A stretch of DNA of 18,747 bases, from NCBI GenBank assembly GCA_965644495.1, contig CBFFSA010000103.1:1-18747 (forward strand), written 5' to 3'. The DNA is from Perkinsela sp. CCAP 1560/9 (Eukaryota > Protista > Euglenozoa: Kinetoplastea). A program made the translations under genes and the position numbers. Position 1 is the first letter of the stretch. Each line of letters opens with the position of its first letter. Below the pieces are notes generated by a model, which had not been told where the DNA came from, searched no databases, and saw only the letters and a list, made by a program, of their open reading frames with translations. Of the stretch, positions 1-15,219 are shown in pieces.

Positions 1-2193
1 TCTTCCTCTTTCTTCCTCTTTCTTCCTCTTTCTTCCTCTTTCTTCCTCTTTCTTCCTCTTTCTTCCTCTTTCTTCCTCTTTCTTCCTCTTTCTTCCTCTT
101 TCTTCCTCTTTCTTCCTCTTTCTTCCTCTTTCTTCCTCTTTCTTCCTCTTTCTTCCTCTTTCTTCCTCTTTCTTCCTCTTTCTTCCTCTTTCTTCCTCTT
201 TCTTCCTCTTTCTTCCTCTTTCTTCCTCTTTCTTCCTCTTTCTTCCTCTTTCTTCCTCTTTCTTCCTCTTTCTTCCTCTTTCTTCCTCTTTCTTCCTCTT
301 TCTTCCTCTTTCTTCCTCTTTCTTCCTCTTTCTTCCTCTTTCTTCCTCTTTCTTCCTCTTTCTTCCTCTTTCTTCCTCTTTCTTCCTCTTTCTTCCTCTT
401 TCTTCCTCTTTCTTCCTCTTTCTTCCTCTTTCTTCCTCTTTCTTCCTCTTTCTTCCTCTTTCTTCCTCTTTCTTCCTCTTTCTTCCTCTTTCTTCCTCTT
501 TCTTCCTCTTTCTTCCTCTTTCTTCCTCTTTCTTCCTCTTTCTTCCTCTTTCTTCCTCTTTCTTCCTCTTTCTTCCTCTTTCTTCCTCTTTCTTCCTCTT
601 TCTTCCTCTTTCTTCCTCTTTCTTCCTCTTTCTTCCTCTTTCTTCCTCTTTCTTCCTCTTTCTTCCTCTTTCTTCCTCTTTCTTCCTCTTTCTTCCTCTT
701 TCTTCCTCTTTCTTCCTCTTTCTTCCTCTTTCTTCCTCTTTCTTCCTCTTTCTTCCTCTTTCTTCCTCTTTCTTCCTCTTTCTTCCTCTTTCTTCCTCTT
801 TCTTCCTCTTTCTTCCTCTTTCTTCCTCTTTCTTCCTCTTTCTTCCTCTTTCTTCCTCTTTCTTCCTCTTTCTTCCTCTTTCTTCCTCTTTCTTCCTCTT
901 TCTTCCTCTTTCTTCCTCTTTCTTCCTCTTTCTTCCTCTTTCTTCCTCTTTCTTCCTCTTTCTTCCTCTTTCTTCCTCTTTCTTCCTCTTTCTTCCTCTT
1001 TCTTCCTCTTTCTTCCTCTTTCTTCCTCTTTCTTCCTCTTTCTTCCTCTTTCTTCCTCTTTCTTCCTCTTTCTTCCTCTTTCTTCCTCTTTCTTCCTCTT
1101 TCTTCCTCTTTCTTCCTCTTTCTTCCTCTTTCTTCCTCTTTCTTCCTCTTTCTTCCTCTTTCTTCCTCTTTCTTCCTCTTTCTTCCTCTTTCTTCCTCTT
1201 TCTTCCTCTTTCTTCCTCTTTCTTCCTCTTTCTTCCTCTTTCTTCCTCTTTCTTCCTCTTTCTTCCTCTTTCTTCCTCTTTCTTCCTCTTTCTTCCTCTT
1301 TCTTCCTCTTTCTTCCTCTTTCTTCCTCTTTCTTCCTCTTTCTTCCTCTTTCTTCCTCTTTCTTCCTCTTTCTTCCTCTTTCTTCCTCTTTCTTCCTCTT
1401 TCTTCCTCTTTCTTCCTCTTTCTTCCTCTTTCTTCCTCTTTCTTCCTCTTTCTTCCTCTTTCTTCCTCTTTCTTCCTCTTTCTTCCTCTTTCTTCCTCTT
1501 TCTTCCTCTTTCTTCCTCTTTCTTCCTCTTTCTTCCTCTTTCTTCCTCTTTCTTCCTCTTTCTTCCTCTTTCTTCCTCTTTCTTCCTCTTTCTTCCTCTT
1601 TCTTCCTCTTTCTTCCTCTTTCTTCCTCTTTCTTCCTCTTTCTTCCTCTTTCTTCCTCTTTCTTCCTCTTTCTTCCTCTTTCTTCCTCTTTCTTCCTCTT
1701 TCTTCCTCTTTCTTCCTCTTTCTTCCTCTTTCTTCCTCTTTCTTCCTCTTTCTTCCTCTTTCTTCCTCTTTCTTCCTCTTTCTTCCTCTTTCTTCCTCTT
1801 TCTTCCTCTTTCTTCCTCTTTCTTCCTCTTTCTTCCTCTTTCTTCCTCTTTCTTCCTCTTTCTTCCTCTTTCTTCCTCTTTCTTCCTCTTTCTTCCTCTT
1901 TCTTCCTCTTTCTTCCTCTTTCTTCCTCTTTCTTCCTCTTTCTTCCTCTTTCTTCCTCTTTCTTCCTCTTTCTTCCTCTTTCTTCCTCTTTCTTCCTCTT
2001 TCTTCCTCTTTCTTCCTCTTTCTTCCTCTTTCTTCCTCTTTCTTCCTCTTTCTTCCTCTTTCTTCCTCTTTCTTCCTCTTTCTTCCTCTTTCTTCCTCTT
2101 TCTTCCTCTTTCTTCCTCTTTCTTCCTCTTTCTTCCTCTTTCTTCCTCTTTCTTCCTCTTTCTTCCTCTTTCTTCCTCTTTCTTCCTCTTTCT
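1..2193. repeat. Perfect 10-bp tandem array (TCTTCCTCTT)n / (AAGAGGAAGA)n, about 219 copies, running off the window start
   Basis: Read directly; no variant units seen; ends at ...tctt tct|ggtctgcc. Confidence 0.98.
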
Positions 2194-2471
2194 GGTCTGC
2201 CGGGTTGTCTTTCGTTGAGAAGTAATCGGCCTTGATGCAGACGCCCCGGTCCTTCGCCCATTGCAAAGAGTTGGTTTGATATTCCTCCTGATTTTGAAAT
2301 TTTTCTGTTTAGCGCTGCTTGGCACGAAGTGTTATCTACCCATAATTGCAAGCACGTGCCCCGGGTGAAATGTCTCTCCAACTTCTGGAGGGAAAGTCTA
2401 ACGGCTGTCGCTTCTGCCCTATTTACTTCGTATTGCCAAGAGGATTTCCATTGCCCCCCCACGATGATCAC
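2194..2471 (-). pseudogene. RNase H domain remnant of a YR retrotransposon pol (paralog of the 8281-13944 element)
   Basis: Manual minus-strand translation, absent from the ORF track: VIIVGGQWKSSWQYEVNRAEATAVRLSLQKLERHFTRGTCLQLWVDNTSCQAALNRKISKSGGISNQL, frameshift, then LQWAKDRGVCIKADYFSTKDNPAD. It aligns to YEVNRAEAAAVRLALEK...RGTCLDVFVDNTSCQAALNRRISKS...STDENPAD of the pol ending at 12743. Confidence 0.93.
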
Positions 2472-2602
2472 TGAGACTTTAAGGATAATAATTCACCGAA
2501 GTGGAAAATATAGAATGTCAGTGACTAATTGTATTATAAAATGATACTTTTCGTCGTATAGCAATTTCTCTTGTTTTCCTACTGTAATACTACATTTTTT
2601 GG

Positions 2603-3913
2603 ATGGTATCTACACGGGCGCGCTCACGCGAGGAAGAAGCTCCAGTGGTTTTTCAAACTCCAGGTCGGGACGACCCTGTAGAAAGTGTGGACTCGTCGGA
2701 ATGCACCAGTGATATACACACCAGAGTAAGTCGTCTTGACCAATCGCTAGAAAATTTAACATCGCGAATGGCGATTGTTCAAGAAGATGTGCGCCGAACC
2801 ATCCGACAAGATGTACAGGAAGTGTTGAGAAAAAAGTTACAAGGGATAGTGCGCGACGAAATGAAGGCTTTTCAGTCTCGTTCCTCGTCGGCGGAACCTC
2901 CCTCTACACAAGCAGTGCCACATTCAACTTTTCCCTTCTCAGTTCGGAAAGATCGCCAAGACATGACAAATACTTTTCGTTGTTGCGTGGACAGTGCTAC
3001 CAATGCGTTGTACGCAAGCTTACCTGTCATCAAGCCAGAAAATCTTTCTTCTAAGGTGCAGGAGATCTTGGACAAGATTGCACGATATGACTTGGAGGTA
3101 GAAGTAACTTGGTTTGCGGCCACAAGTTCTCCAAGCGAAGCAACAACATGGCGCGGTATTCCGATAGAAGAAGGTGAATTTGAAGAGCAGAAAACTGTCG
3201 TTATTAGCTATAATGTGGGAAACTACCACCTTCCTAATCCCAAACTCAATTATACGAGAATCGAGATTGTGAAAGCGGAACCAGCTATGCCGGATCGATT
3301 GGAACCTTGTGAAACAAATGGTGATGAAACAATTCCAGAAGCCGACGAATTTAAAGTACGCGATGTCCGAACGTGGAACAAATACATTGCGACGGATAGC
3401 GAGTTCGGGGTTGATTTTCTTCTTTTGCGTATTCGAACCGCCCTGGAACTTCCAAATCCTTTACCGCCAAATTTGCAACCAATGTGGGATGTAATGCAGC
3501 ATTGGGTAGACGACGATAAAGCAAGAGGTGGAATTGACCCGGAGAATGTGGCACAAGTTCAAACAGGGCAAAGAGCGTTGGACGATCTTCGCATGCAGCA
3601 GGGTGTTTATCGCGGAGCCGATCCACGATACCTTCGAATGATCTACGAGGTGAACAAAGACCCGGCGGATGTGATCGGGAATGGCATAGAACACAGTGTC
3701 AACTACCAGCGAAAAGTATCTGCGCGACGTGGGGGATACGGTCGTGCCACTTATCCTAGTGCAAATTTCGGAAGAGGACGTTGTATGACTCGAGGTCGTG
3801 CGTTCAGGCCATGTGAACCTTATCGCCCAAATTACACCTCGGACAATAACAGAAAGACCCAGTACTCACCCACATCGGATTTCTCCGCGGGGGGCGCTGG
3901 CCGCCGAATGTGA
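2603..3913 (+). CDS. Gag-like protein of YR element 1 (436 aa)
   Basis: Blocks shared with the 8446-9849 gag: YHLPNPKLNYTRIEI vs YRFPHPEINYHSLEL; FKVRDVRTWNKYIATD vs FSPYDPVTWQPWIDTD; C-terminal DFSAGG vs DFRGG. Predicted coiled-coil N-terminus, RG-rich C-terminus, no CCHC knuckle. Confidence 0.82.
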   Translation: MVSTRARSREEEAPVVFQTPGRDDPVESVDSSECTSDIHTRVSRLDQSLENLTSRMAIVQEDVRRTIRQDVQEVLRKKLQGIVRDEMKAFQSRSSSAEPPSTQAVPHSTFPFSVRKDRQDMTNTFRCCVDSATNALYASLPVIKPENLSSKVQEILDKIARYDLEVEVTWFAATSSPSEATTWRGIPIEEGEFEEQKTVVISYNVGNYHLPNPKLNYTRIEIVKAEPAMPDRLEPCETNGDETIPEADEFKVRDVRTWNKYIATDSEFGVDFLLLRIRTALELPNPLPPNLQPMWDVMQHWVDDDKARGGIDPENVAQVQTGQRALDDLRMQQGVYRGADPRYLRMIYEVNKDPADVIGNGIEHSVNYQRKVSARRGGYGRATYPSANFGRGRCMTRGRAFRPCEPYRPNYTSDNNRKTQYSPTSDFSAGGAGRRM

Positions 3914-4494
3914 CTCCCAGTAGTCCACCCCCTCCAAAGCCAGTTAAAAACAAAACATATAAAAGTTCAAAATCAGTCTCTATACAAACTTCCTTTGCCA
4001 GTGAAAATAGCATTATTATGCCAGAAAAGCAGAATTCAAAGTCAGCAACAGATACTAAAAGCAAAAATTTCAGTACAAAATTGCAAGTCAGTAAAAATAA
4101 AAACAAAAATTTCACTTCAAACTCGGAAACAATACAAAAGCAAGTCAAAGACGAACACCATAGCGAAAAATGCCGGAAACCTCGCTCCAAAGCAGAAGAC
4201 CAGGAAGCCAAACGTTCGCCCCAAGACCACAAACGTGAACAATACAGTGTGGAAGAGATCTCCAGTCACGAAGAACGCCATATCACAGGTCACCCAAAGA
4301 TGCGGTGGTACGATCAGCGAAACAAATATGCGAACGTCTGGAATCCAAACAGCCTCGTCCGACTTTATCCTCAACAACGTATTGCAAGTCACGAATCCGG
4401 AAATCAGAAAGGCAATACGCGGAATATGGGCCACCTCAACATGGAATACGAGGGCACGCCTGATTTTGGACATGTGGCGCCGCAGATTATATAG
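3850..4494 (+). pseudogene. Truncated -1-frame (pol N-terminal) ORF of element 1, overlapping the YR frame
   Basis: Corresponds to track ORF 3910-4494; open from 3850. It is -1 relative to gag, the same arrangement as pol in element 2. Confidence 0.6.
3914..4494 (+). pseudogene. N-terminal fragment of the tyrosine recombinase ORF of element 1 (same frame as gag, after its TGA)
   Basis: KAIRGIWATSTWNTRARL matches EALQPMWATATWATRERL of the 9853-11037 YR. The frame is open from the gag stop to the 18-bp array. Confidence 0.75.
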
Positions 4495-5260
4495 TTTGTA
4501 TTAAGACCACTTTTTGTATTAAGACCACTTTTTGTATTAAGACCACTTTTTGTATTAAGACCACTTTTTGTATTAAGACCACATTTTGTATTAAGACCAC
4601 TTTTTGTATTAAGACCACTTTTTGTATTAAGACCACTTTTTGTATTAAGACCACTTTTTGTATTAAGACCACTTTTTGTATTAAGACCACTTTTCGTATT
4701 AAGACCACTTTTTGTATTAAGACCACTTTTTGTATTAAGACCACTTTTTGTATTAAGACCACTTTTTGTATTAAGACCACTTTTTGTATTAAGACCACTT
4801 TTTGTATTAAGACCACTTTTTGTATTAAGACCACATTTTGTATTAAGACCACTTTTTGTATTAAGACCACTTTTTGTATTAAGACCACTTTTTGTATTAA
4901 GACCACTTTTTGTATTAAGACCACTTTTTGTATTAAGACCACTTTTCGTATTAAGACCACTTTTTGTATTAAGACCACTTTTTGTATTAAGACCACTTTT
5001 TGTATTAAGACCACATTTTGTATTAAGACCACTTTTTGTATTAAGACCACTTTTTGTATTAAGACCACTTTTTGTATTAAGACCACTTTTTGTATTAAGA
5101 CCACATTTTGTATTAAGACCACTTTTCGTATTAAGACCACTTTTTGTATTAAGACCACTTTTTGTATTAAGACCACTTTTTGTATTAAGACCACTTTTTG
5201 TATTAAGACCACTTTTTGTATTAAGACCACTTTTTGTATTAAGACCACTTTTTGCATTAA
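4495..5260. repeat. Minisatellite: 42 full copies of TTTGTATTAAGACCACTT plus a degenerate partial copy
   Basis: Read directly; head-to-tail with no spacers; two single-base variant types. Confidence 0.97.
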
Positions 5261-5550
5261 TACGTTGGTACAAAATGGCGGAGGCCTCCGGACCGTTCGA
5301 AAGTGTGTTGGAAGTCTGTGGCAAACTTCGGACGGCCAGGTGTGGTCGGGGCAACCTTTTTCTGCCTCCACAGCAGAGGGGGGTTGGGACAAAACTCCGG
5401 CAGCGGGCCCTTTTACAGATGTCAAAGGTTTTGGCTGTGGGAAAACGCGTGGCTGTTGTTTGGTGTATGGCTTATAACGAACGTATTACACTCTGGGAAG
5501 GGGTGGTTCACTCATCGCTTGATGGGTCTGGTTGGCTCGTCAAGTAAGAC

Positions 5551-8280
5551 TTGATGAATGGGCGCCTTCTCCCGTTTCCTCCGAGAGATGATTGTATCCA
5601 TGTGCTAGGCGGCAGAGTTGGACTGCTTCCAAAATCTTTGCGCAAACGTAATCGGAAACGCAAATCCTGCTTTCGGCGTGGCTACCGAGAGCAGAGACCC
5701 AAGATCAAAGCTATGAGAGAGGGGTTTGCAGTAAGCACCATGAATGTAGATACTTTAAAGTGTAAAACCACAGACGAGTTTGCTCTACGTAAATGTTTCC
5801 GTTTGCATCAAGCTGTAGAGTTCATGCGAAGTTACGGCGTAACAATAATGGCCTTGCAGGAAACGCGACTATCGTTCAAGAGCGAGGAACCGATCATTCA
5901 TCGTAGGCTCTATCTGGCTGGCATTAGTGTTAATATATATATTATGAGTGCAATAAAGGGCTATAACGGAATGGCAATGCTGAGTCTGCAACCCATGGGT
6001 GTTGAAAAGATCAATGATCGCATTATGAAAGGAACAATGCATATTGGAAAGATGAAGGCGTGTATATTTAATGTTTACTCCCCGACGGCTGGTGCAAAGA
6101 AAGAGAAGCAAGAATCGTTTGATGAGGAGCTATTTGATGCTTGGCATCATTCACAATGTTCGCTAAAGATAATATGCGGAGACATGAACGCACCTTTGCA
6201 AGATCCAAATGTCAGAAAATGTTGTTCGGAAAGAGCGCAAGAATTTCGCAAATTTTTGGTAACCCTTGGATCTAAATCGGCTCATCAATGTTGCAGCGCA
6301 GAAAGAAAGTGGACTTATAGGTTTCCACCTACGCCGAAACACCCTGATGGTCTAACAAAACAGCTTGATCATATCATAATAAATTCCCGTTTCAGCTCAG
6401 CATTTCGGTATCAGAAGGTGCTTTTGGCTCCCATACCTACGAGACACTGTGCAGTAATAGCAGGATTAAATATAAAATGGAGAGTGGCATGCAAACCTGG
6501 TAAGTTACAACCGTTTTGGGGATCTTTGAGAAACGAAACCATATGTGATACATTCGTGAAAAATGTGGAGGAGTCAATTCAGGGGGGAAATAAACGGTCA
6601 CGAGAAGGGTCAATTGGCCCCGCTTTATGGGATAAGCTATCGTCCGCAGTCAACTCCGCCGCAGAGAAATTACCCAGGAAAATTGCCAATATTGGAAAAG
6701 CTCCTGACTCGGAAACTGACTCGCATTCCCTTGATATGAAAACTATTGTGCAAATTGCTCGAAATCGAAGGACTTTCGATACCTTTGCTCGAGAACACGG
6801 AAAAATGATTGAAGAATGCGTGAAAGAAGAATGTGAAGTGATCCAAGAAAAGCTATATAAATGTCCAAAAAGCGCGTATCAAGCAATTCGCTATGTTGTA
6901 GGGGAAAATCGAAAAGTATTCTCCATGTTTGGTGAAAATGTTCGAGACAGTATGTGCAGAGTGAGAGGACATTTTCAGGCGATAGGTAACCAATTAAATC
7001 AAATTTCCGAACCGGTAAACTTCCCTAACTGTAATAAAAGCTTAATTGGTATTGAGGATACGGAATTTACCCTAAAGGAGCTCAGAATTTCTCTGCAAAA
7101 AGTCAAATCTGGAAAAGCTTCAGGCTCCGACAACATTCCTATTGAGGCTCTCTCTACATTGGCTCGGAGCGAAGAAGCACTTGGCATGCTCTTGAACATA
7201 ATAAATGAAGTAATGTGTACCGGTGCCGCGGCGGAGAAATGGAAGATGATTCTGCAAGTGCCACTTCCAAAGAAAGGGAATCTCAATGATCTTACAAATT
7301 GGAGACCGATATGCATTGTAAACCATGTGGTAAAGGTAATGAACCGGATGGTACTAGAGCGTATACAACCAGCCGTTGAGAATATGCTTCGCTCAAATCA
7401 GTTTGGATTTCGCCCGCACCGATCCACTGCCGGCGCACAGGAAACTTTCGTGGAAATAGCTACTAAAGCTTCGAGGGGAGAAGGTGTTGCGGTGGCGTTT
7501 GTTGACTTTAAGCAGGCATTTCCTTCCGTTACTTTCTCTGCAATACGAGATGCGCTGAGAGCATTCCACATACCGGAATATATTACTAAAGTTATTATGA
7601 GCATGTATGAAGGCCTGAAATCTTATGTGAGGACGCCTCATGGTGACACCGAATCGTTTTCTATTGAAAATGGTACTCTACAAGGGGATGTGCTTGCGCC
7701 ATATCTCTTTATTATGGTCCTCGACAGGATTATGGCAGAGGCCATTGACGCGAAGGGGTTGGGTGTCATTGCTTATTCCACCGGGACGAAGAGTCGCGGC
7801 GAAAAGCACCTCCGAATTTCTGATGTGGCATATGCAGATGACGTAGTTCTCTTCGCTTCTTCTAGGTCTGAACTCTCCGAAATGCTAGAAAACCTGTGCA
7901 AGTATGCAAAGAGGGCAAACCTTCAGGTAAATCTGGGCAAAAACAAGACCGCATGGATGGTTCTAGGAAAAATTGATATGAAAACTCCCCTTCTAGTCCC
8001 AAGTGTTGGAGAAATCCCCCGAGTATACAAATATAAATATCTTGGAAGTACACAAGAGAATGAAAATCGTCATGTAGCCCCACAAGAACGCATTCTTCTA
8101 GGATGGGCCACAATGCATAAACTTCATGCGATATGGAACTCACCCATTCAAGTCGCAAGTCGGTTAAAAATTATAAATATTAATTACAACTGCGGCACGT
8201 GGAATATTTCATCGAATCAAATGAGCGAATTGGACGTACAAGTCAGCAAAATGCGAAGATGGGTATGCGGAGTAGGGAAA
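5551..8280 (+). CDS. LINE polyprotein, 5' part: apurinic endonuclease plus reverse transcriptase (true start uncertain, e.g. ATG 5554 or 5713)
   Basis: APE motifs TMNVDTL, ALQETR, NVYSPT, GDMNA, LDHII, TRHCAV. RT motifs PKKG, WRPI, QFGFR, FVDFKQAF, GTLQGDVLAPYLF, YADD, YKYLG. The TAA at 8281 belongs to the inserted element. Confidence 0.95.
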
Positions 8281-8444
8281 TAATAGTTCACGTTTTGAAA
8301 TTTAGCCGAGGGGCGGCTATATATTTGCCTGCTGGCCCTTCGGGGCACATAATTTTCTCAAATTATGATGTAGTATTCTTTAACGATAAAGATACAGTTT
8401 CTGTACCTTGTTGGTTGTTATTTTGTTACGTTTAAAGTTTTGTG
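8281..8444 (+). repeat. Terminal repeat A1
   Basis: 8281-8379 is identical to 13526-13624 (99 bp); 8414-8444 is identical to 13673-13703 (31 bp); the middle segments differ. Confidence 0.95.
8381..8413 (+). other. Spliced-leader (mini-exon)-like sequence TAACGATAAAGATACAGTTTCTGTACCTTGTTG
   Basis: Contains the conserved kinetoplastid/diplonemid SL core CAGTTTCTGTAC, a TAACG 5' part and a TTG 3' end at the expected spacing. No SL-RNA intron or Sm site recognised downstream. Confidence 0.85.
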
Positions 8445-8445
8445 T

Positions 8446-9849
8446 ATGAGATCCCAACGTTTACGGGCTCCGTCGGAGCCACGCCAGGAGCGCGATAGAT
8501 CACCGAAGCGGAATAGGGCGCCGACACCCATTCAGACCTCCTCCGTCCAAGACCATTCTAAGCGTCAGTCCCTTTCGTGCCCTCCCGTGCGCCCCCCTCT
8601 CCCCCCTCTCCCCACGCAGCCGGCTCCGCAGGTATCCGCGCGACCTCCTCCGATTCCCCCTACTCCTGTCCCAGCGCGCCGAAAGGTACGCCCTTCAGGA
8701 AGAGCACTCAGCCCCGCCCGCGAACCGCCTAGCCCTCTCCCTTCCAACCTTCCCAGTTTGCCTGCGAGCTCCCTCCCTAGCCCGTACCCTTTTCCGCTGG
8801 AGGCTCCCGAGCCCCATATGCGACGAAGAGGAACCCTTAACCCCGACCAGGTTGAGGCTTCTCGCTCGCCGCGCCGTTACGAGGCCCTTGACATTGACCA
8901 CGTCGAGTTGCCTCAGCGTTCACGCTGTGATGCGCGTGGGATCATGACACAATCCAGCAAAGAAGAGTTCATCACGAAAGTGATTGAGCTTCTGCGCAAG
9001 GACTACGAGGTCACCGTCGAGGCTGTATGGTCCCTTCCCCGTGACGGCCTACGGCAGACGGTTATAGGGTTGGTGCATATGACGCATCCTAAGGACCCTA
9101 ACTCAACTGAGTTGTTCGCCGAGTGGGATGGGGACAAGAACACTGCCTATCGTTTTCCCCATCCCGAGATCAACTACCACTCTTTGGAACTGGCCCATGT
9201 TCGGGCGCAGATGCCGGGTGGGAAACCAGTTGAAGATCTGATCCCCACGTTTGAACGCGTCCGTATTACGGACCCGAAAGGCTTCTCCCCCTACGATCCG
9301 GTTACTTGGCAACCGTGGATCGACACGGATGATTTGTTCAAGCCACGTGAACTCATCCGTGAGCTGCGCGAAGCTCCGCAGCTTGGGGTACGCTTCAACC
9401 CTCCGCCGCAGCGTGAGCGCCTGTTCAAGATGTTAACTGAATGGGTGTACGCTGCGTGCAATACGGAGGGATGGCTAGAGAAGCACAACCTCGCCGTAGC
9501 CCTTCTCATCATCGAAGAGCTTCGCAACCATTATTGGGCTGCGGCGGGCGTTGCTGTCGAGCGTGTGCAACAGCGGTTGCACCGTGACGACGACCCTCAG
9601 GACCGCTACGGTCAGCTTGTGGTTGACGAGCAACTGAGGGGCCGGACTGCGCAGCGTGCTCCTCGTCGACGCAGCCAAGGACCTTTCTGTTTTGGCTGTC
9701 ATCAGCCAGGCCACCTCCGATCGAACTGCCCCCAAGCGTCCCAACAGCAGGGGGGGCAGTTCCGTACCACACGCACCCCGCAACAGGATTTTCGCGGCGG
9801 GGTGGTGGGCGGCGCCAACCGTTACGGCGCAACACGGGCTTTCCACTAG
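8446..9849 (+). CDS. Gag-like protein with Pro-rich N-terminus and CCHC zinc knuckle
   Basis: ATG at 8446; CFGCHQPGHLRSNC fits CX2CX4HX4C; first ORF of the element. Confidence 0.9.
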   Translation: MRSQRLRAPSEPRQERDRSPKRNRAPTPIQTSSVQDHSKRQSLSCPPVRPPLPPLPTQPAPQVSARPPPIPPTPVPARRKVRPSGRALSPAREPPSPLPSNLPSLPASSLPSPYPFPLEAPEPHMRRRGTLNPDQVEASRSPRRYEALDIDHVELPQRSRCDARGIMTQSSKEEFITKVIELLRKDYEVTVEAVWSLPRDGLRQTVIGLVHMTHPKDPNSTELFAEWDGDKNTAYRFPHPEINYHSLELAHVRAQMPGGKPVEDLIPTFERVRITDPKGFSPYDPVTWQPWIDTDDLFKPRELIRELREAPQLGVRFNPPPQRERLFKMLTEWVYAACNTEGWLEKHNLAVALLIIEELRNHYWAAAGVAVERVQQRLHRDDDPQDRYGQLVVDEQLRGRTAQRAPRRRSQGPFCFGCHQPGHLRSNCPQASQQQGGQFRTTRTPQQDFRGGVVGGANRYGATRAFH

Positions 9850-9866
9850 GAAATGCCCCCCACCCC
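9786..9866 (+). promoter_or_regulatory. Putative -1 ribosomal frameshift signal: G_GAT_TTT, 6-nt spacer, stem-loop
   Basis: The slippery heptamer is in the gag frame. GGGGTGGTGGGC (9799-9810) pairs 11/12 with GCCCCCCACCCC (9855-9866). The -1 frame is open into RT. Confidence 0.7.
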
Positions 9867-12743
9867 AATTACTGCTCGTGCCCGTCGTCCCAGGCGACGA
9901 CGGGTGGATATTCTTACCCCCGTTTCCTCCCCGTCTCTCCGCCAGCGCGAAAGACGGCCACGCGTGCGTGGCACTACTCCTCCTCCCCGCCCTCTCTCCC
10001 CGTTACGTCTAAGGCGCAGAAGCGTCTCCCTCCCAATCCGTCCTCTACCCCGGCTTCCCGTTCCCGTTTACACCGCCGCCAAGACCGCCGCCGCCAAAAC
10101 CGCTGCCGTCGTAACCGCCGACGCCGCGCAGCCTCCAGGAGGACGCCGCCAGGAGCTGCTGAGGGCGATTCTTCGAATGCCCCCCGAGGACCCGCGCGCC
10201 ACTCAATTGGGCGAGGCGCTCCAGCCCATGTGGGCAACGGCCACGTGGGCCACAAGGGAGCGACTGTGGTTCCGCCTGCGCGAGTATTGCCAGGCGAAGG
10301 GAATCACCGCGAATCCTGCAAACGCGGTGCTCTTCCTGGAGACTCTGCCTCTCGCTACCTCGACGCGCATGGGGTACGCAGGGGCATTGAGGACTCTGTT
10401 CGAGCTCATGGGAATCGAAGGTACCCCATTGAGTCTCTACGTAAAGGCCCTGCAAGCGCAGGGGGGGCTAGAACCCACGCGGCAGATGCTACCAATCACG
10501 CCACTTCTTCTAAAGAAGCTGAGACGTCATCTCGACGTAAAGGAGAGCATGTGTTGCCTCCTGTGTTGGAAAGCCGCTGCGAGATGGACCGAGACTGCCG
10601 ACCTGAGGCGGGAGCAGTTCGTGAGTGTGGCCAGTCACGAGGTAATCATTTATTGGGGCAGGGGGACCAAGACAACCCGTCTGAATCCTTACCGGCCGTA
10701 CCTCTACGCGATAGTGACTGGACCGGGGACACCCGAACTGGCTCAGTTTGTGGGAAGTTTGAGACCAGGCCAGCGCCTGTGTTACACGACGGTCCGGGAG
10801 ATGGACCACAGGATGAATCAACTTCTCGGTCCGGGGTATGGAACACATTCCATAAAAAGAGGTGCAATTACTTACCTATTCCACGAGATCTCCCTCGGGA
10901 ATCTCAGGATGGAGGACGTCCAGAACCTCACGAAACACCTCAACGTCGAATCACTGTTGCGCTACAACGCAAGCAGTATTACAACGGCAAGGGCTCTCGG
11001 GACGCAGAGAGTCTCAGCACGTCTCCCAGTGCTGTAACCTCGGAGCACGTGGCAAAGTGCTTCGAGGAAGTGCCTTACCTTCGCAGGCACTCCGTTGTTT
11101 GTGCACGCCGCTCTTCACGGCTAGCCAAGGCACACGACGCTCACCTACCTTTGCACGTTAAGAAGTCGATACCTGTTATCCATTTGGATCAGGTTAAGGA
11201 GTGGATGAGTCTGTCAGCTGCCACTCGTTTTCGCAAGGTAGTGGATGAATTATTATGGGTACCTAAAGCCCCGTACCCCGAACCTAGTGTGAAAGGTTCA
11301 TTGCCTGAGGCGGACGTCCGATTGTTGGAGGACGCAGGCATAATCTCCAAGGTCCCGGCGCAGGAGTTGAGAAAGCGCCCATCGATGCAGTTCATGATTC
11401 CCTTCACGGTTGTGGAGACCGATGATCAGGGCAATCAGCGCAGAAGGTTTATTTCGTGGACACGGGACGATAATGATAGACTTAAAGGATATGAACCACA
11501 GGTCCCTTTATATCATCCCTCCAAGTACCTTCATAAGGCGCACGAGCCGATGGCTGTGAAGCGGGACTTCACATGCGGGTTTTACCAGATTGGTATCCCG
11601 AAGAGGGCGCGGCCCAAATTCCGCCTTAGAACGAACAGTGGAGACGTGTTTGAGATGAACGTCCTCCCGATGGGCCATAGGTGTGCACCGGAGGTTATGC
11701 ACACGGTTACCGCCGCGATTGCTGGCGAGGCGTCGATTTGTTCTCAGCGCTACTCGTTTCACCGAGGCGCTATCGACGTTTATGTTGACGGAGTTCGGTT
11801 TGCAGGAACCCACTCCGAGGCCACCACGTACGCTCAGTTCATTGACGAGCGTTGCGACAAGGCGAACGGTCTTTTCAAAGATCGGGGTCAGCCCCCTGTA
11901 GCACAGTACGTGTTCAATGGGGTGGCGTTCGACCATAACGCGCATACGGTCTGCCTGGGACCGCGAGTGATCAGGAAACTGCGAGCCGACTCTTTCTTCA
12001 ACATTTCCTTTGTTGACCTAGAGGCGGTGGTGGGGCGCCTCATTTATGGCTCCGCAGTTCTCCGGCTCAATATGCCGCGATTTTATTTCGCTTTGAAGGT
12101 GGCGCAACGGCGTATCAACTTGTTGAACCGTTGCCCGAAGTTATGTGACCGTCCGGTCGCACTCCCTGTCGTCACTCGCTCCATGCTAGCAGAGTGGAGA
12201 AACGAGTTGTTGGAGAATGTTCCACGGTCTCCACCTCCCCACCCCGATGTTGTTCCACACAAGCATCGTCTCTACACCGATGCCTCGGTGAAAGGGTGGG
12301 GAGCGATTATGTATTTAGACAGCGGAGAGGTTTTGATTACGGGAGAGGCGTGGCCTGAGTCATCCTCGTATGAGGTGAACCGTGCGGAAGCTGCAGCAGT
12401 CCGCTTAGCCCTCGAGAAGTTTTCCGCGCATTGCCCCCGTGGAACCTGCTTGGATGTTTTTGTTGACAACACCTCCTGTCAGGCTGCACTGAACAGGAGG
12501 ATCTCCAAGTCAGAGGGGGTTTCAATGGAATTGCGCGAAGTCCTGCGACTGACAGAGGACAAAGGTATTTGTGTCAAGGCAGCGTACATATCCACGGATG
12601 AGAACCCGGCGGATGCTGTCAGTCGCGGGAAGGAGATTGAGAGAGAGAAGGTTGAGAAATATAAAGGCAACATCGACAAATACAGCGATAATCAGCATCA
12701 TCATATTGGTAAGCTAGACAGTCATATTGAAGGAAAACCCTAG
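9786..12743 (+). CDS. Pol: reverse transcriptase plus RNase H (frame open 9627-12743; track start 10230)
   Basis: DIRS-type RT motifs RDFTCGFYQI, LPMGHRCAP, YVDG, FNGV. RNase H motifs YTDAS, NRAE, FVDNT, NPADAVSRG. Manual translation shows no stop from 9627 to 10230. Confidence 0.9.
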   Translation, partial: GFSRRGGGRRQPLRRNTGFPLGNAPHPNYCSCPSSQATTGGYSYPRFLPVSPPARKTATRAWHYSSSPPSLPVTSKAQKRLPPNPSSTPASRSRLHRRQDRRRQNRCRRNRRRRAASRRTPPGAAEGDSSNAPRGPARHSIGRGAPAHVGNGHVGHKGATVVPPARVLPGEGNHRESCKRGALPGDSASRYLDAHGVRRGIEDSVRAHGNRRYPIESLRKGPASAGGARTHAADATNHATSSKEAETSSRRKGEHVLPPVLESRCEMDRDCRPEAGAVRECGQSRGNHLLGQGDQDNPSESLPAVPLRDSDWTGDTRTGSVCGKFETRPAPVLHDGPGDGPQDESTSRSGVWNTFHKKRCNYLPIPRDLPRESQDGGRPEPHETPQRRITVALQRKQYYNGKGSRDAESLSTSPSAVTSEHVAKCFEEVPYLRRHSVVCARRSSRLAKAHDAHLPLHVKKSIPVIHLDQVKEWMSLSAATRFRKVVDELLWVPKAPYPEPSVKGSLPEADVRLLEDAGIISKVPAQELRKRPSMQFMIPFTVVETDDQGNQRRRFISWTRDDNDRLKGYEPQVPLYHPSKYLHKAHEPMAVKRDFTCGFYQIGIPKRARPKFRLRTNSGDVFEMNVLPMGHRCAPEVMHTVTAAIAGEASICSQRYSFHRGAIDVYVDGVRFAGTHSEATTYAQFIDERCDKANGLFKDRGQPPVAQYVFNGVAFDHNAHTVCLGPRVIRKLRADSFFNISFVDLEAVVGRLIYGSAVLRLNMPRFYFALKVAQRRINLLNRCPKLCDRPVALPVVTRSMLAEWRNELLENVPRSPPPHPDVVPHKHRLYTDASVKGWGAIMYLDSGEVLITGEAWPESSSYEVNRAEAAAVRLALEKFSAHCPRGTCLDVFVDNTSCQAALNRRISKSEGVSMELREVLRLTEDKGICVKAAYISTDENPADAVSRGKEIEREKVEKYKGNIDKYSDNQHHHIGKLDSHIEGKP
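9853..11037 (+). CDS. Tyrosine recombinase (394 aa)
   Basis: Catalytic set: R (AARWTE), K (GTKT), HSIKRGA, H (TKH), Y (LLRY). Confidence 0.92.
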   Translation: MPPTPITARARRPRRRRVDILTPVSSPSLRQRERRPRVRGTTPPPRPLSPLRLRRRSVSLPIRPLPRLPVPVYTAAKTAAAKTAAVVTADAAQPPGGRRQELLRAILRMPPEDPRATQLGEALQPMWATATWATRERLWFRLREYCQAKGITANPANAVLFLETLPLATSTRMGYAGALRTLFELMGIEGTPLSLYVKALQAQGGLEPTRQMLPITPLLLKKLRRHLDVKESMCCLLCWKAAARWTETADLRREQFVSVASHEVIIYWGRGTKTTRLNPYRPYLYAIVTGPGTPELAQFVGSLRPGQRLCYTTVREMDHRMNQLLGPGYGTHSIKRGAITYLFHEISLGNLRMEDVQNLTKHLNVESLLRYNASSITTARALGTQRVSARLPVL

Positions 12744-12762
12744 GGGACAGGATCACCAAATA

Positions 12763-12870
12763 CAAAAAAAAAAAAAAAAAAAACAAGACAAGAAAAAAAG
12801 AAAAAAAACAAAGACAAGAAAAAAAGAAAAAAAACAAAGACAAGAAAAAAAGAAAAAAAAAAAAAAAAAA
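12763..12870 (+). repeat. A-rich low-complexity tract with CA(A)AGACAAG-An units, directly after the pol stop
   Basis: Read directly. Confidence 0.85.
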
Positions 12871-13308
12871 GAGAGCGGACGGGGTCCTGGGGTTTGGAGG
12901 TTGTCCCTATAATTTTGGAAGGTTATGGATGTTAATCGGTTGACAAACTTTATCCTCACGCCTTGGTTTTCGAAAAAAACAAGGTTCCCCAATGTGAGAT
13001 AAAGGTGAGTAAAGTTTTCTTTACTCTGCGATTAGCGCCTTAATGTTTTTAACCGCGTCATTGTTGACACGGCCGTACACCACGCCTAGTTGCTCCACAC
13101 TTCTAGGTCCCAAGTTGGTATATGGGCAGAGGTTGAAAGCGTAACCTGTGTAGCTCGTGTGAGCTTGTAAAGGGCGTGGTAATGGACTGGTCATCTATTG
13201 CTATCGTTATCCTTTTGTGAGCTCTGCATATTTTGATATTTTCTATCTATTAATATTTGACTACGTGATTGGGCATTTTGCGTTTATTGTGACGTGTGTG
13301 TGGGCAGG

Positions 13309-13525
13309 TTGGCCGAGGGTTCCGGTGGGGGGGAACCCCGTTAACAGAGTGACATTGATTGTGTTGTTTTATGCAGGCTTGTTTCTTTTCCATCTTTGTG
13401 CGTGTGAAATGAATGAATGATATGTTGTGTCATTTTGAATTACGATTGAGCTATTCATAGTTGTTCATTTATTCATATATGTTATCAGTGTATATGTTTC
13501 CAGGGAGCCCCTCGGCGTGGATTTC
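13309..13525 (+). repeat. Repeat B1 (217 bp)
   Basis: Identical by eye to 13728-13944. Confidence 0.96.
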
Positions 13526-13703
13526 TAATAGTTCACGTTTTGAAATTTAGCCGAGGGGCGGCTATATATTTGCCTGCTGGCCCTTCGGGGCACATAATTT
13601 TCTCAAATTATGATGTAGTATTCTCTAATTGCATGGAGGGGGGTGTTTACTCGTTTGTTATATTCTTGTTAGGTTGTTATTTTGTTACGTTTAAAGTTTT
13701 GTG
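13526..13703 (+). repeat. Repeat A2, with a candidate trans-splice acceptor (T-rich tract then AG at 13671-13672)
   Basis: Matches A1 in two blocks; abuts B1 to form the B|A junction. Confidence 0.95.
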
Positions 13704-13727
13704 CCCACCCACCGAGCCCCCAGCCAT

Positions 13728-13944
13728 TTGGCCGAGGGTTCCGGTGGGGGGGAACCCCGTTAACAGAGTGACATTGATTGTGTTGTTTTATGCAGGCTTG
13801 TTTCTTTTCCATCTTTGTGCGTGTGAAATGAATGAATGATATGTTGTGTCATTTTGAATTACGATTGAGCTATTCATAGTTGTTCATTTATTCATATATG
13901 TTATCAGTGTATATGTTTCCAGGGAGCCCCTCGGCGTGGATTTC
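13728..13944 (+). repeat. Terminal repeat B2 (217 bp)
   Basis: Identical to B1; ends GTGGATTTC, followed by LINE sequence. Confidence 0.96.
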
Positions 13945-15219
13945 AGATGGAAAACGGGAAAGTGCATTCGTCTTGAATCTCTTTATCAAGATGACTTGAA
14001 ACTCAGCACAACATCAAAAATACAACGTGCTCAACTTATTGGCCATCTTGTTCGACATGAATCGCCGTTTAGCCTAGCCATTCTGTGGCGCGTGCAAGAC
14101 AAATCATCATATCCTTCGATCTCTGAATTATGCGCAAAAGATTTAAATCTTTCAATAGAAGAAGTCATACATTCGTCTCGGGACCGCGCCTTATGGAGGT
14201 CAAGCGTTGATCGACTACGAAATCGGATCGAACCACGCCCTGATTATGTACCCATCGAAGCAAAATCATGGGAAAAACGAGCAATGGTTGCACGAAAAGA
14301 GAGTCAATATAAATCACTACAATTCGTCGAAGAAGGCGCATTGCCATTCCCAAATATTTCTCGAGCCGTACACATGTATACTGATGGCTCTCTTAAAACA
14401 ACGAAATCGAAAGTTACTTCTCGATGCGGAATCGTGTGGTCGGGGGATGGTATTGAGAAGTCCTTAATGGGAGTACGACCTCCAACGGATATTGAGCTCA
14501 CCATAACTGCGGTAGAGCTCTATGCCGTATATGAGGCACTGAATCTTGCGGCACATTATGGGCAGGACATTGTATTACACACAGACTCAAAATACGTATG
14601 GGAATTCTTCCACATTATAAGGCATCGATTTTGCATAGTTGGGTTTCAATTATTCCGGAGCGCACAACTACTCAAGAAGATACAACTTTTGTGTTCTAAG
14701 ATCGAGCAAAATAGCAATGTATATTGCATCAAAACCAGAGGGCATGAAGGAAACCCTCACAACGCAACCTCAGACTGGCTCGGTAAACGAGCTTGCGCAC
14801 ATCAAGACGAAAACCCTTCCTTTACTTACCGCGGTTTTGATATCGTGACCAATCAAAAGAGGAAAGGTAACGAAGTTCAAAACAATATGAAAAAGAACAA
14901 AAACAAAAATACGAAATTACCAGAGTTTGCGCACACACCTATCGAAATGTCTCCTACGCACTCTATAAGCACGAAAAATAAAGGTAACCTGATAAATGAA
15001 AAGGGGAAACGATCAAGATCCAAGAACAAGCGTGAAAATGCGAATACGCACAGCAACCAAAAAGCACGAAAAACTGATGGAAAGAGGAGTACGAATACAT
15101 ATTCACCAGGATTAGCAGAGGTAACTTTAGCAAGAAAGCATCCGCAAAGAAAGCGAGCTAATTGTGAAGAGGAGTGCAAGAGAACTCGAAAGGGGGGGAG
15201 CTCTTCTTCTAAAACGTGA
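13945..15219 (+). CDS. LINE polyprotein, 3' part: post-RT region, RNase H, basic tail
   Basis: RAQLIGHLVRH post-RT motif. RNase H motifs YTDGS, VELYAV, HTDSKYV, GHEGNPHNATSD. In frame with 5551-8280. Confidence 0.93.
   Translation, partial: RWKTGKCIRLESLYQDDLKLSTTSKIQRAQLIGHLVRHESPFSLAILWRVQDKSSYPSISELCAKDLNLSIEEVIHSSRDRALWRSSVDRLRNRIEPRPDYVPIEAKSWEKRAMVARKESQYKSLQFVEEGALPFPNISRAVHMYTDGSLKTTKSKVTSRCGIVWSGDGIEKSLMGVRPPTDIELTITAVELYAVYEALNLAAHYGQDIVLHTDSKYVWEFFHIIRHRFCIVGFQLFRSAQLLKKIQLLCSKIEQNSNVYCIKTRGHEGNPHNATSDWLGKRACAHQDENPSFTYRGFDIVTNQKRKGNEVQNNMKKNKNKNTKLPEFAHTPIEMSPTHSISTKNKGNLINEKGKRSRSKNKRENANTHSNQKARKTDGKRSTNTYSPGLAEVTLARKHPQRKRANCEEECKRTRKGGSSSSKT

Follow-up and report, generated by a model that had tools for sequence, protein, structure and literature searches.

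In the kinetoplastid Perkinsela sp. CCAP 1560/9, one copy of a retrotransposon carries the spliced leader (SL) of its host inside its left terminal repeat. The DNA analysed here, referred to as the window, is the whole of contig CBFFSA010000103.1 (assembly GCA_965644495.1; 18,747 nucleotides (nt), forward strand), and the element occupies positions 8281-13944 in the order A1, gag, recombinase, reverse transcriptase (RT)/RNase H, B1, A2, spacer, B2, where A1 and A2 are copies of one split direct repeat, A, and B1 and B2 of another, B. In A1, the SL stands in for the pyrimidine tract and AG acceptor that A2 retains, and it adjoins the first base that follows the AG. Five other independent copies of the family carry SL relics joined at or beside the same acceptor, each with an upstream joint of its own. 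Quite probably, RNA of the element undergoes trans-splicing at the AG of A before it is reverse-transcribed, A1 is normally rebuilt from A2, and the SL in the window is a scar of replication.

The spliced leader in repeat A1 and its recurrence

The host SL is encoded by a tandem SL RNA gene on G000:C1 (~661,000-662,000), in which each 297-bp unit contains a 38-nt exon, with AACTTTAACG at its 5' end and CTTGTTG at its 3' end, followed by GTATGAG. The transcript is predicted to form three stem-loops, one of which spans the splice donor, as is usual in SL RNAs; an Rfam search of the gene matched no family, and a tRNA search of the repeat unit found none. An earlier note on this DNA, made from the sequence alone, had the SL begin with AACTAACG, which is wrong for this host; the exon also differs at several positions from the published SL primer of Perkinsela sp. 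CCAP1560/4, which makes the organism studied here a relative of that strain and another species. Alignment of the host SL to the insert in A1, a check named in that note, gives an exact match: window positions 8378-8413 are exon nt 3-38 on the forward strand, with 0 mismatches, and 200 shuffled versions of the window yielded none, also when up to 3 mismatches were tolerated. A conserved 13-mer from the SL core has 508 occurrences in the 21-Mb genome, where a control pattern has 0-1, and two of the 508, 297 bp apart on C1, are the tandem SL RNA units; the excess implies that reverse transcription of trans-spliced RNAs is frequent in this genome.

Comparison of the two A repeats places the SL at the acceptor. 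The 5' part of A1 (8281-8379, A positions 1-99) is identical to 13526-13624 in A2, and identity over 103 nt (8281-8383 against 13526-13628) is 99%. After a divergent stretch, the repeats agree again over all 32 nt of 8413-8444 and 13672-13703, starting with a G that in A1 ends the SL and in A2 completes the AG; the 31 nt downstream of the AG (8414-8444, identical to 13673-13703) are referred to below as R, and would form the 5' untranslated region of a spliced mRNA. This is the layout described in the earlier note: an identical 5' part, a divergent stretch and an identical 31 nt. The divergent part of A2 ends with a pyrimidine tract (13650-13670) and the AG (13671-13672), after which GTTGTT follows. 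The divergent part of A1 is the SL, which is joined to the first base of A past the AG (GTTGTTATTTTG...), and the gag ATG lies at 8446, 32 nt downstream of the SL. On its left side, the SL overlaps A by 2 nt, CT (8378-8379), and replaces A positions 100-147. The note had placed a (C)TAA microhomology here (A2 13625-13628); the overlap is CT only, because the SL of this host differs from the trypanosomatid SL. There is no SL intron sequence beside the relic, and both of its flanks are element sequence in register with the acceptor. The presence of an SL within the left repeat of this copy is thus confirmed.

The SL is not a feature of the family. Copies of A were counted with a fixed-flank pattern that spans the divergent stretch; among the 56 found, 55 have the A2 form with its acceptor, at least 15 of them being 5' repeats directly before gag, and the window A1 alone has the SL instead. 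Comparing A1 and A2 across genomic copies, as the earlier note had also suggested, therefore finds the window type of SL joint in a single A1. Subfamilies that are 90-95% identical to the internal region of the window copy retain both a pyrimidine tract and an AG at the corresponding site, and A2 is intact in all six copies examined, three of them scarred (window, C8 and C21) and three unscarred (C33, C38 and C22).

Searches with the post-AG segment and with the SL/segment joint recover SL relics in six of the ~21 5' ends that count as independent in the young family: the window copy and five others, with different flanks and different upstream joints. Three linked copies on C36 lie in a common, locally rearranged 45-kb region and are counted as one event. 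The relic extends over SL nt 3-38 in all but the C21 copy, where it starts at nt 12-17 (the start being ambiguous through the overlap) and has one mismatch. The landings range widely: A98-99 with the 2-nt CT overlap in the window, A171 with a 5-nt overlap, TAAAG, on C21, A177 with neither overlap nor extra nucleotides on C36, A178 with 7 extra nt (GATCTAT) on C52, A178 with 2 extra nt (AT) on C65 and, on C8, gag +142 with 3 extra nt (AAT), so that R and the start of gag are duplicated. On the downstream side, five of the six relics are joined to the same base, the first of R, while the SL on C65 meets a variant sequence slightly upstream of it. On C12, a diverged subfamily is represented by a fragment that starts with a truncated SL relic, again at the homologous acceptor. 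Scars that lie upstream of the acceptor are probably not inherited, because new copies would take the upstream part of A from A2; the confinement of each scar to one locus fits this expectation.

The source of A1 is recorded in a copy of a related subfamily on C4 (L073), where gag is preceded, from the left, by a full A, the 24-nt spacer, 25 nt from the start of B and the final 14 nt of R. The spacer and B come after A nowhere but at the 3' end of the element, so A2 and its surroundings must have been the source of this 5' repeat, through a switch at the wrong place; this supports the proposal of the earlier note that losses to splicing are made good by the split repeats. The two A repeats of the C38 copy have one variant in common at A74, on the upstream side of the AG, and differ at position 164, within R, where the A1 allele is also that of the C52 copy; as a single case, this A1 would fit the chimera expected of a transfer within R. 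Errors at the joint of A and gag also occur without an SL: a deletion from ~A70 to gag +25 (L078, C7:46500-47200), a 9-nt duplication at the ATG (L077, C24:78360-79060) and an extra TG, likewise a small duplication, in a copy with a B repeat directly upstream of A1 (L055, C17:245730-246514).

A proposed route through trans-spliced RNA and its rivals

In the proposed mechanism, SL trans-splicing at the AG inside A would cut the element RNA out of a longer transcript, yielding a template made of the SL, the 31 nt of R and gag onward, with B1-A2 still present near its 3' end. Minus-strand cDNA would normally transfer from the R at the 5' end to the identical R in A2 and then copy the acceptor and the upstream part of A from A2, restoring a full A1. 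When the RT runs into the SL, the transfer would take place without homology or on 2-5 nt, leaving an SL scar. In the window copy, the RT would have run through the SL to about its third nucleotide and switched into A98-99 on the CT overlap; A positions 100-147 would thereby have been lost and the SL fixed in their place, and the recombinase would have integrated the product without a target-site duplication. The core of this scheme, trans-splicing inside A followed by copying of the SL and a jump of the RT into A, was put forward in the earlier note and, apart from the CTAA contact, is supported by the host SL match, the six scars, the intact A2 repeats, the A2-only sequence before gag in L073 and the insertion into a LINE without a target-site duplication. 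From these scars in DNA we infer trans-splicing at this AG in living cells, the action of the element's own RT in the switch and the origin of clean copies, too, from spliced RNA.

Several points weigh against this route. The use of the AG is deduced from assembled genomic DNA, from which the sequence of A1 is also taken, and the matches by which the recombinase and the RT were assigned are weak. The model requires that the acceptor in A2 be skipped in the full-length template. In three scars, the landing point is A177-178, no more than 2 nt from where A ends, a clustering that simple microhomology fails to explain. Finally, about two thirds of the copies have a clean A1, which is equally expected if the usual template is unspliced at this AG. 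Such a template, an unspliced or upstream-spliced read-through RNA that holds all of A1, could be the norm, with scars arising only when the RT switches between it and a co-packaged spliced mRNA, in which case the split repeats would not serve to undo trans-splicing. This rival is also favored by the C8 scar, which lands inside gag and needs a second template or re-copying, and by the landing sites in A, which cannot distinguish A1 from A2. Yet the A2-only sequence at the 5' end of L073 implies that at least some A1 repeats are made from A2, a rate of six scars in 21 is high for a rare by-product, and the chimeric A1 on C38 fits a transfer within R; we therefore regard an unspliced usual template as unlikely.

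The other rivals fare far worse. A heritable, functional SL mimic in the 5' repeat, the alternative offered in the earlier note, could be read from the position of the SL 32 nt upstream of the gag ATG and has a parallel in another repeat family of this genome, which carries an SL relic behind conserved upstream sequence at many loci. However, the SL replaces the acceptor in one of 56 fixed-flank copies of A, every other subfamily keeps the acceptor, and the six scars have six different joints, a shared joint being found only within the one rearranged region on C36; the mimic is already contradicted and is rejected as highly improbable. It is just as hard to credit that a processed cDNA was inserted into A by a long interspersed nuclear element (LINE), or that a processed retrocopy recombined as DNA with an intact element. 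LINE-type retrocopies of SL-headed mRNAs do exist in this genome, but the window relic lacks an A-tail and a target duplication and is not at the 5' end of an insert, being preceded by 99 nt of the element's own repeat, and such a route would require that six copies each gained an insertion and also a deletion that stops precisely at the AG. The element as a whole likewise lacks these marks of a LINE retrocopy: no A-tail was found at its end and no target duplication at its insertion. An assembly artefact, in the form of a chimeric read or cDNA contamination, could have put the SL into A1, whose sequence comes from the assembly, but spliced cDNA would lack the 99 nt of A that precede the SL, scars of the same kind occur at six loci with different joints, and more than 500 SL-like fragments are reported from an independently assembled relative (PMC5601477); an explanation of this kind is barely conceivable.

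The element, its family and its insertion site

The traits of the DIRS order are present in the window copy, namely A1 / B1-A2-B2 split repeats, no target-site duplication, and gag followed by overlapping recombinase and RT/RNase H open reading frames (ORFs), and by these the element is best classed as a VIPER/TATE-like tyrosine-recombinase retrotransposon with split direct repeats. The same repeat layout, A1 ... B1-A2-spacer-B2, recurs in copies on C8, C33, C38 and C22, and ~30 copies match the window copy at 90-100%. The window copy is intact and, as its repeat pairs are identical, judged young.

All three ORFs lie on the forward strand. The gag-like ORF (8446-9849, 467 amino acids) is open throughout and has a weak zinc-knuckle match at residues 415-430, under the Pfam cut-off; an exact-product look-up among transcript contigs returned no record. 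The putative tyrosine recombinase ORF (9853-11037), also open and in frame with gag past one stop codon, contains candidate HxxR and Y motifs (HSIKRG and LLRY), and H332, K335 and Y371 are invariant across 6 homologues. Its closest Atlas clusters are Phage_integrase/XerD (score 0.98); searches gave no Pfam match, no PDB sequence match and no named homologue, and its AlphaFold model is poor (pLDDT 52). The RT/RNase H ORF (10230-12743) overlaps the recombinase ORF and has weak RVT_1 and RT_RNaseH matches; homologues in Diplonema, at 27-28% identity, carry RT_RNaseH domains. The ENA contigs that contain pol homologues carry the same SL as the host, which marks them as coming from the same or a very near organism, and they are thus not an independent test.

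An A-rich tract (12757-12876, forward strand), 3' of the pol stop codon, differs in length among copies, and alignments to other copies break here. In other copies, it is the site of an SL-headed gene copy (L079, C24:73500-74300) and of a 2.2-kb insertion (C22:49167-51428), and it seems to be a favored target of LINE-type insertion. The joint of the SL-headed gene in L079 to this tract was considered as a template switch; LINE-type insertion into an A-rich target explains it equally well, and it was not counted.

The 3' repeat region, on the same strand, consists of B1 (13309-13525), A2, the complete repeat A (13526-13703), a 24-nt spacer found only after A2 (13704-13727) and B2 (13728-13944), with B1 and B2 identical at 217/217 nt. 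Together with the first ~25 nt of B2, the spacer forms a strong hairpin at 13704-13752 (z = -3.1 for the fold of 13672-13800). Its 5' foot, at the A2/spacer boundary, is where three SL scars land, and its 3' foot is where L073 has its misplaced switch. An Rfam search of the region found no ribozyme or other family and gave two chance-level matches only. A 10-bp perfect inverted repeat, GCCCCTCGGC / GCCGAGGGGC, surrounds the B|A junction (window 13507-13559) and could be a recombinase site. Elsewhere, B, A and spacer form tandem 419-bp units, three at G000:C34:57906-58821 and two at C21:19020-19516, which recall the SIRE units of Trypanosoma cruzi, derived from VIPER; SIRE may also furnish host genes with trans-splice acceptors.

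The element interrupts a LINE, the endonuclease and RT part of which lies upstream (5551-8280; Pfam Exo_endo_phos and RVT_1) and the RNase H part downstream (13945-15219; Pfam RNase_H), both on the forward strand. In five paralogues, the LINE is uninterrupted here, the left flank ending at base 1814 and the right flank starting at base 1815, so the insertion made no target-site duplication and no deletion; the left edge of A1 and the right edge of B2 are the exact insertion boundaries. Just upstream of the interrupted LINE ORF, a long array of an 18-bp tandem repeat occupies 4351-5400, with at least 43 registers and up to 100% identity.

SL sequences also occur in this genome in settings other than repeat A. 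One repeat family, present at at least 17 loci (e.g., C1:1468268, C16:159310-237438 and L094:6060-6160), has a full SL relic behind a constant upstream sequence that ends ...CACGTACAATA and ahead of a short leader and ATGGGAGTG; the SL seems to be inherited there as an internal part of the repeat unit. In a dispersed family (e.g., C1:710249, C2:841709 and C4:65953), the SL relic is cut at various 5' points and followed by GTAC(A/T)TTTT...CCTTAGTTCA, which differs from the real SL intron (GTATGAG...); this family looks like a 5'-truncating retroposon, similar to a LINE or a short interspersed nuclear element, with a trans-spliced RNA. A ~4-kb retrocopy of an SL-headed mRNA lies inside the gag of another element copy (L085, G000:C22:121100-126100, ~710-4745), with its SL cut to the last 14 nt, an A8 tail and a 7-8-bp target duplication (AGTGATT), and has a duplicate at C34 near 30415; it indicates that LINE-type retroposition of trans-spliced mRNAs is active here. 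Full-length relics genome-wide, as well as the scars on C8, C52 and C65, often have AT, AAT or GAT before CTTTAACG, where the SL gene has AA; the RT may misread modified cap-proximal nucleotides or the cap itself.

Known systems and the meaning of the scars

The closest known relatives of the element are VIPER and TATE, which combine split repeats with gag followed by overlapping recombinase and RT/RNase H ORFs and insert without a target duplication (PMC12278014, PMC6681497). The ORF order, the A1 ... B1-A2-B2 repeats and the absence of a target-site duplication are shared with VIPER/TATE of trypanosomatids and Bodo and with the split direct repeats of the Ngaro/PAT type, whereas the 24-nt spacer after A2, the weakness of the Pfam matches and named homologues that come from Diplonema set the element apart from VIPER/TATE. 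The papers on VIPER and TATE mention neither an SL in the repeats nor trans-splicing of the element RNA (PMC12278014, PMC6681497).

DNA copies of the SL are known from other settings. In dinoflagellates, SL relics before retroposed genes are established marks of retroposition (PMC6050394, PMC5585692). In a Perkinsela sp. genome, more than 500 SL RNA gene fragments have been reported, some near ingi-like retrotransposons, together with an L1Tc-like RNA that carries the SL; the authors interpreted the fragments as SL genes in decay and drew a link, left open, to ingi-like LINEs rather than to recombinase elements (PMC5601477). As in these cases, an intron-less, DNA-encoded SL exon marks the copy of a trans-spliced RNA here, but the relics of dinoflagellates and Perkinsela head simple retrocopies, whereas in the window the SL lies between two parts of a terminal repeat, in an element that uses the recombinase route. 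A physical link between kinetoplastid retroelements and SL sequence is also known from the non-LTR (long terminal repeat) elements SLACS, CZAR and CRE (PMC12278014). These insert at a fixed site in SL RNA genes and are flanked by the gene halves, while here the SL exon alone is found inside the element. Insertion of this type, targeting an SL gene, was considered for the window and rejected, there being no SL intron at the relic and the real SL genes lying on another contig.

Retroviruses and LTR retrotransposons make their first strand transfer via the R repeat and in this way regain sequence that is missing from the transcript. The 31 nt after the acceptor, present in both A1 and A2, would serve as a similar R, with the RNA ends deduced here from DNA. 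In contrast to the retroviral and LTR R, the 5' end would be set by trans-splicing rather than by a promoter, and a foreign 38-nt leader would lie upstream of R, so that an overrun leaves a recognizable host tag. Within the DIRS order, DIRS-1 regains its full length from a sub-genomic transcript and is the subject of the sole experimental study found (PMC7192593); for elements with split direct repeats, replication has been modelled from structure, and the literature search found no experimental test on them. In trans-splicing organisms, a route by which retroelements obtain a usable RNA is known only for LINEs, through internal promoters and ribozymes (PMC5814959).

The element is of a known kind, and the SL scars seem to be new: the literature search turned up neither an SL within a split direct repeat nor scars from which strand transfer could be read, in line with the statement of the earlier note that it knew of none for DIRS-order elements. 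The scars tag the 5' end of the template with host sequence that copying of DNA cannot supply, and by this tag they show the start of the RNA, the move of the cDNA into A and, in one copy, the move to the 3' repeat A2. They make the replication model testable, including in VIPER and TATE of trypanosomes, and allow some of the "SL gene fragments" known from Perkinsela to be reinterpreted. More broadly, trans-spliced, capped mRNA may be the regular template of VIPER-like elements in kinetoplastid-type hosts, with the split repeats shedding the SL and restoring the acceptor in each cycle, a generalization that we see about equal reason to accept and to doubt. If spliced mRNA is indeed the regular template, the scars would be a natural record of strand-transfer errors of the RT, left in ~6 of 21 insertions, and the replication model long assumed for split-direct-repeat elements would for the first time have direct evidence from sequence.

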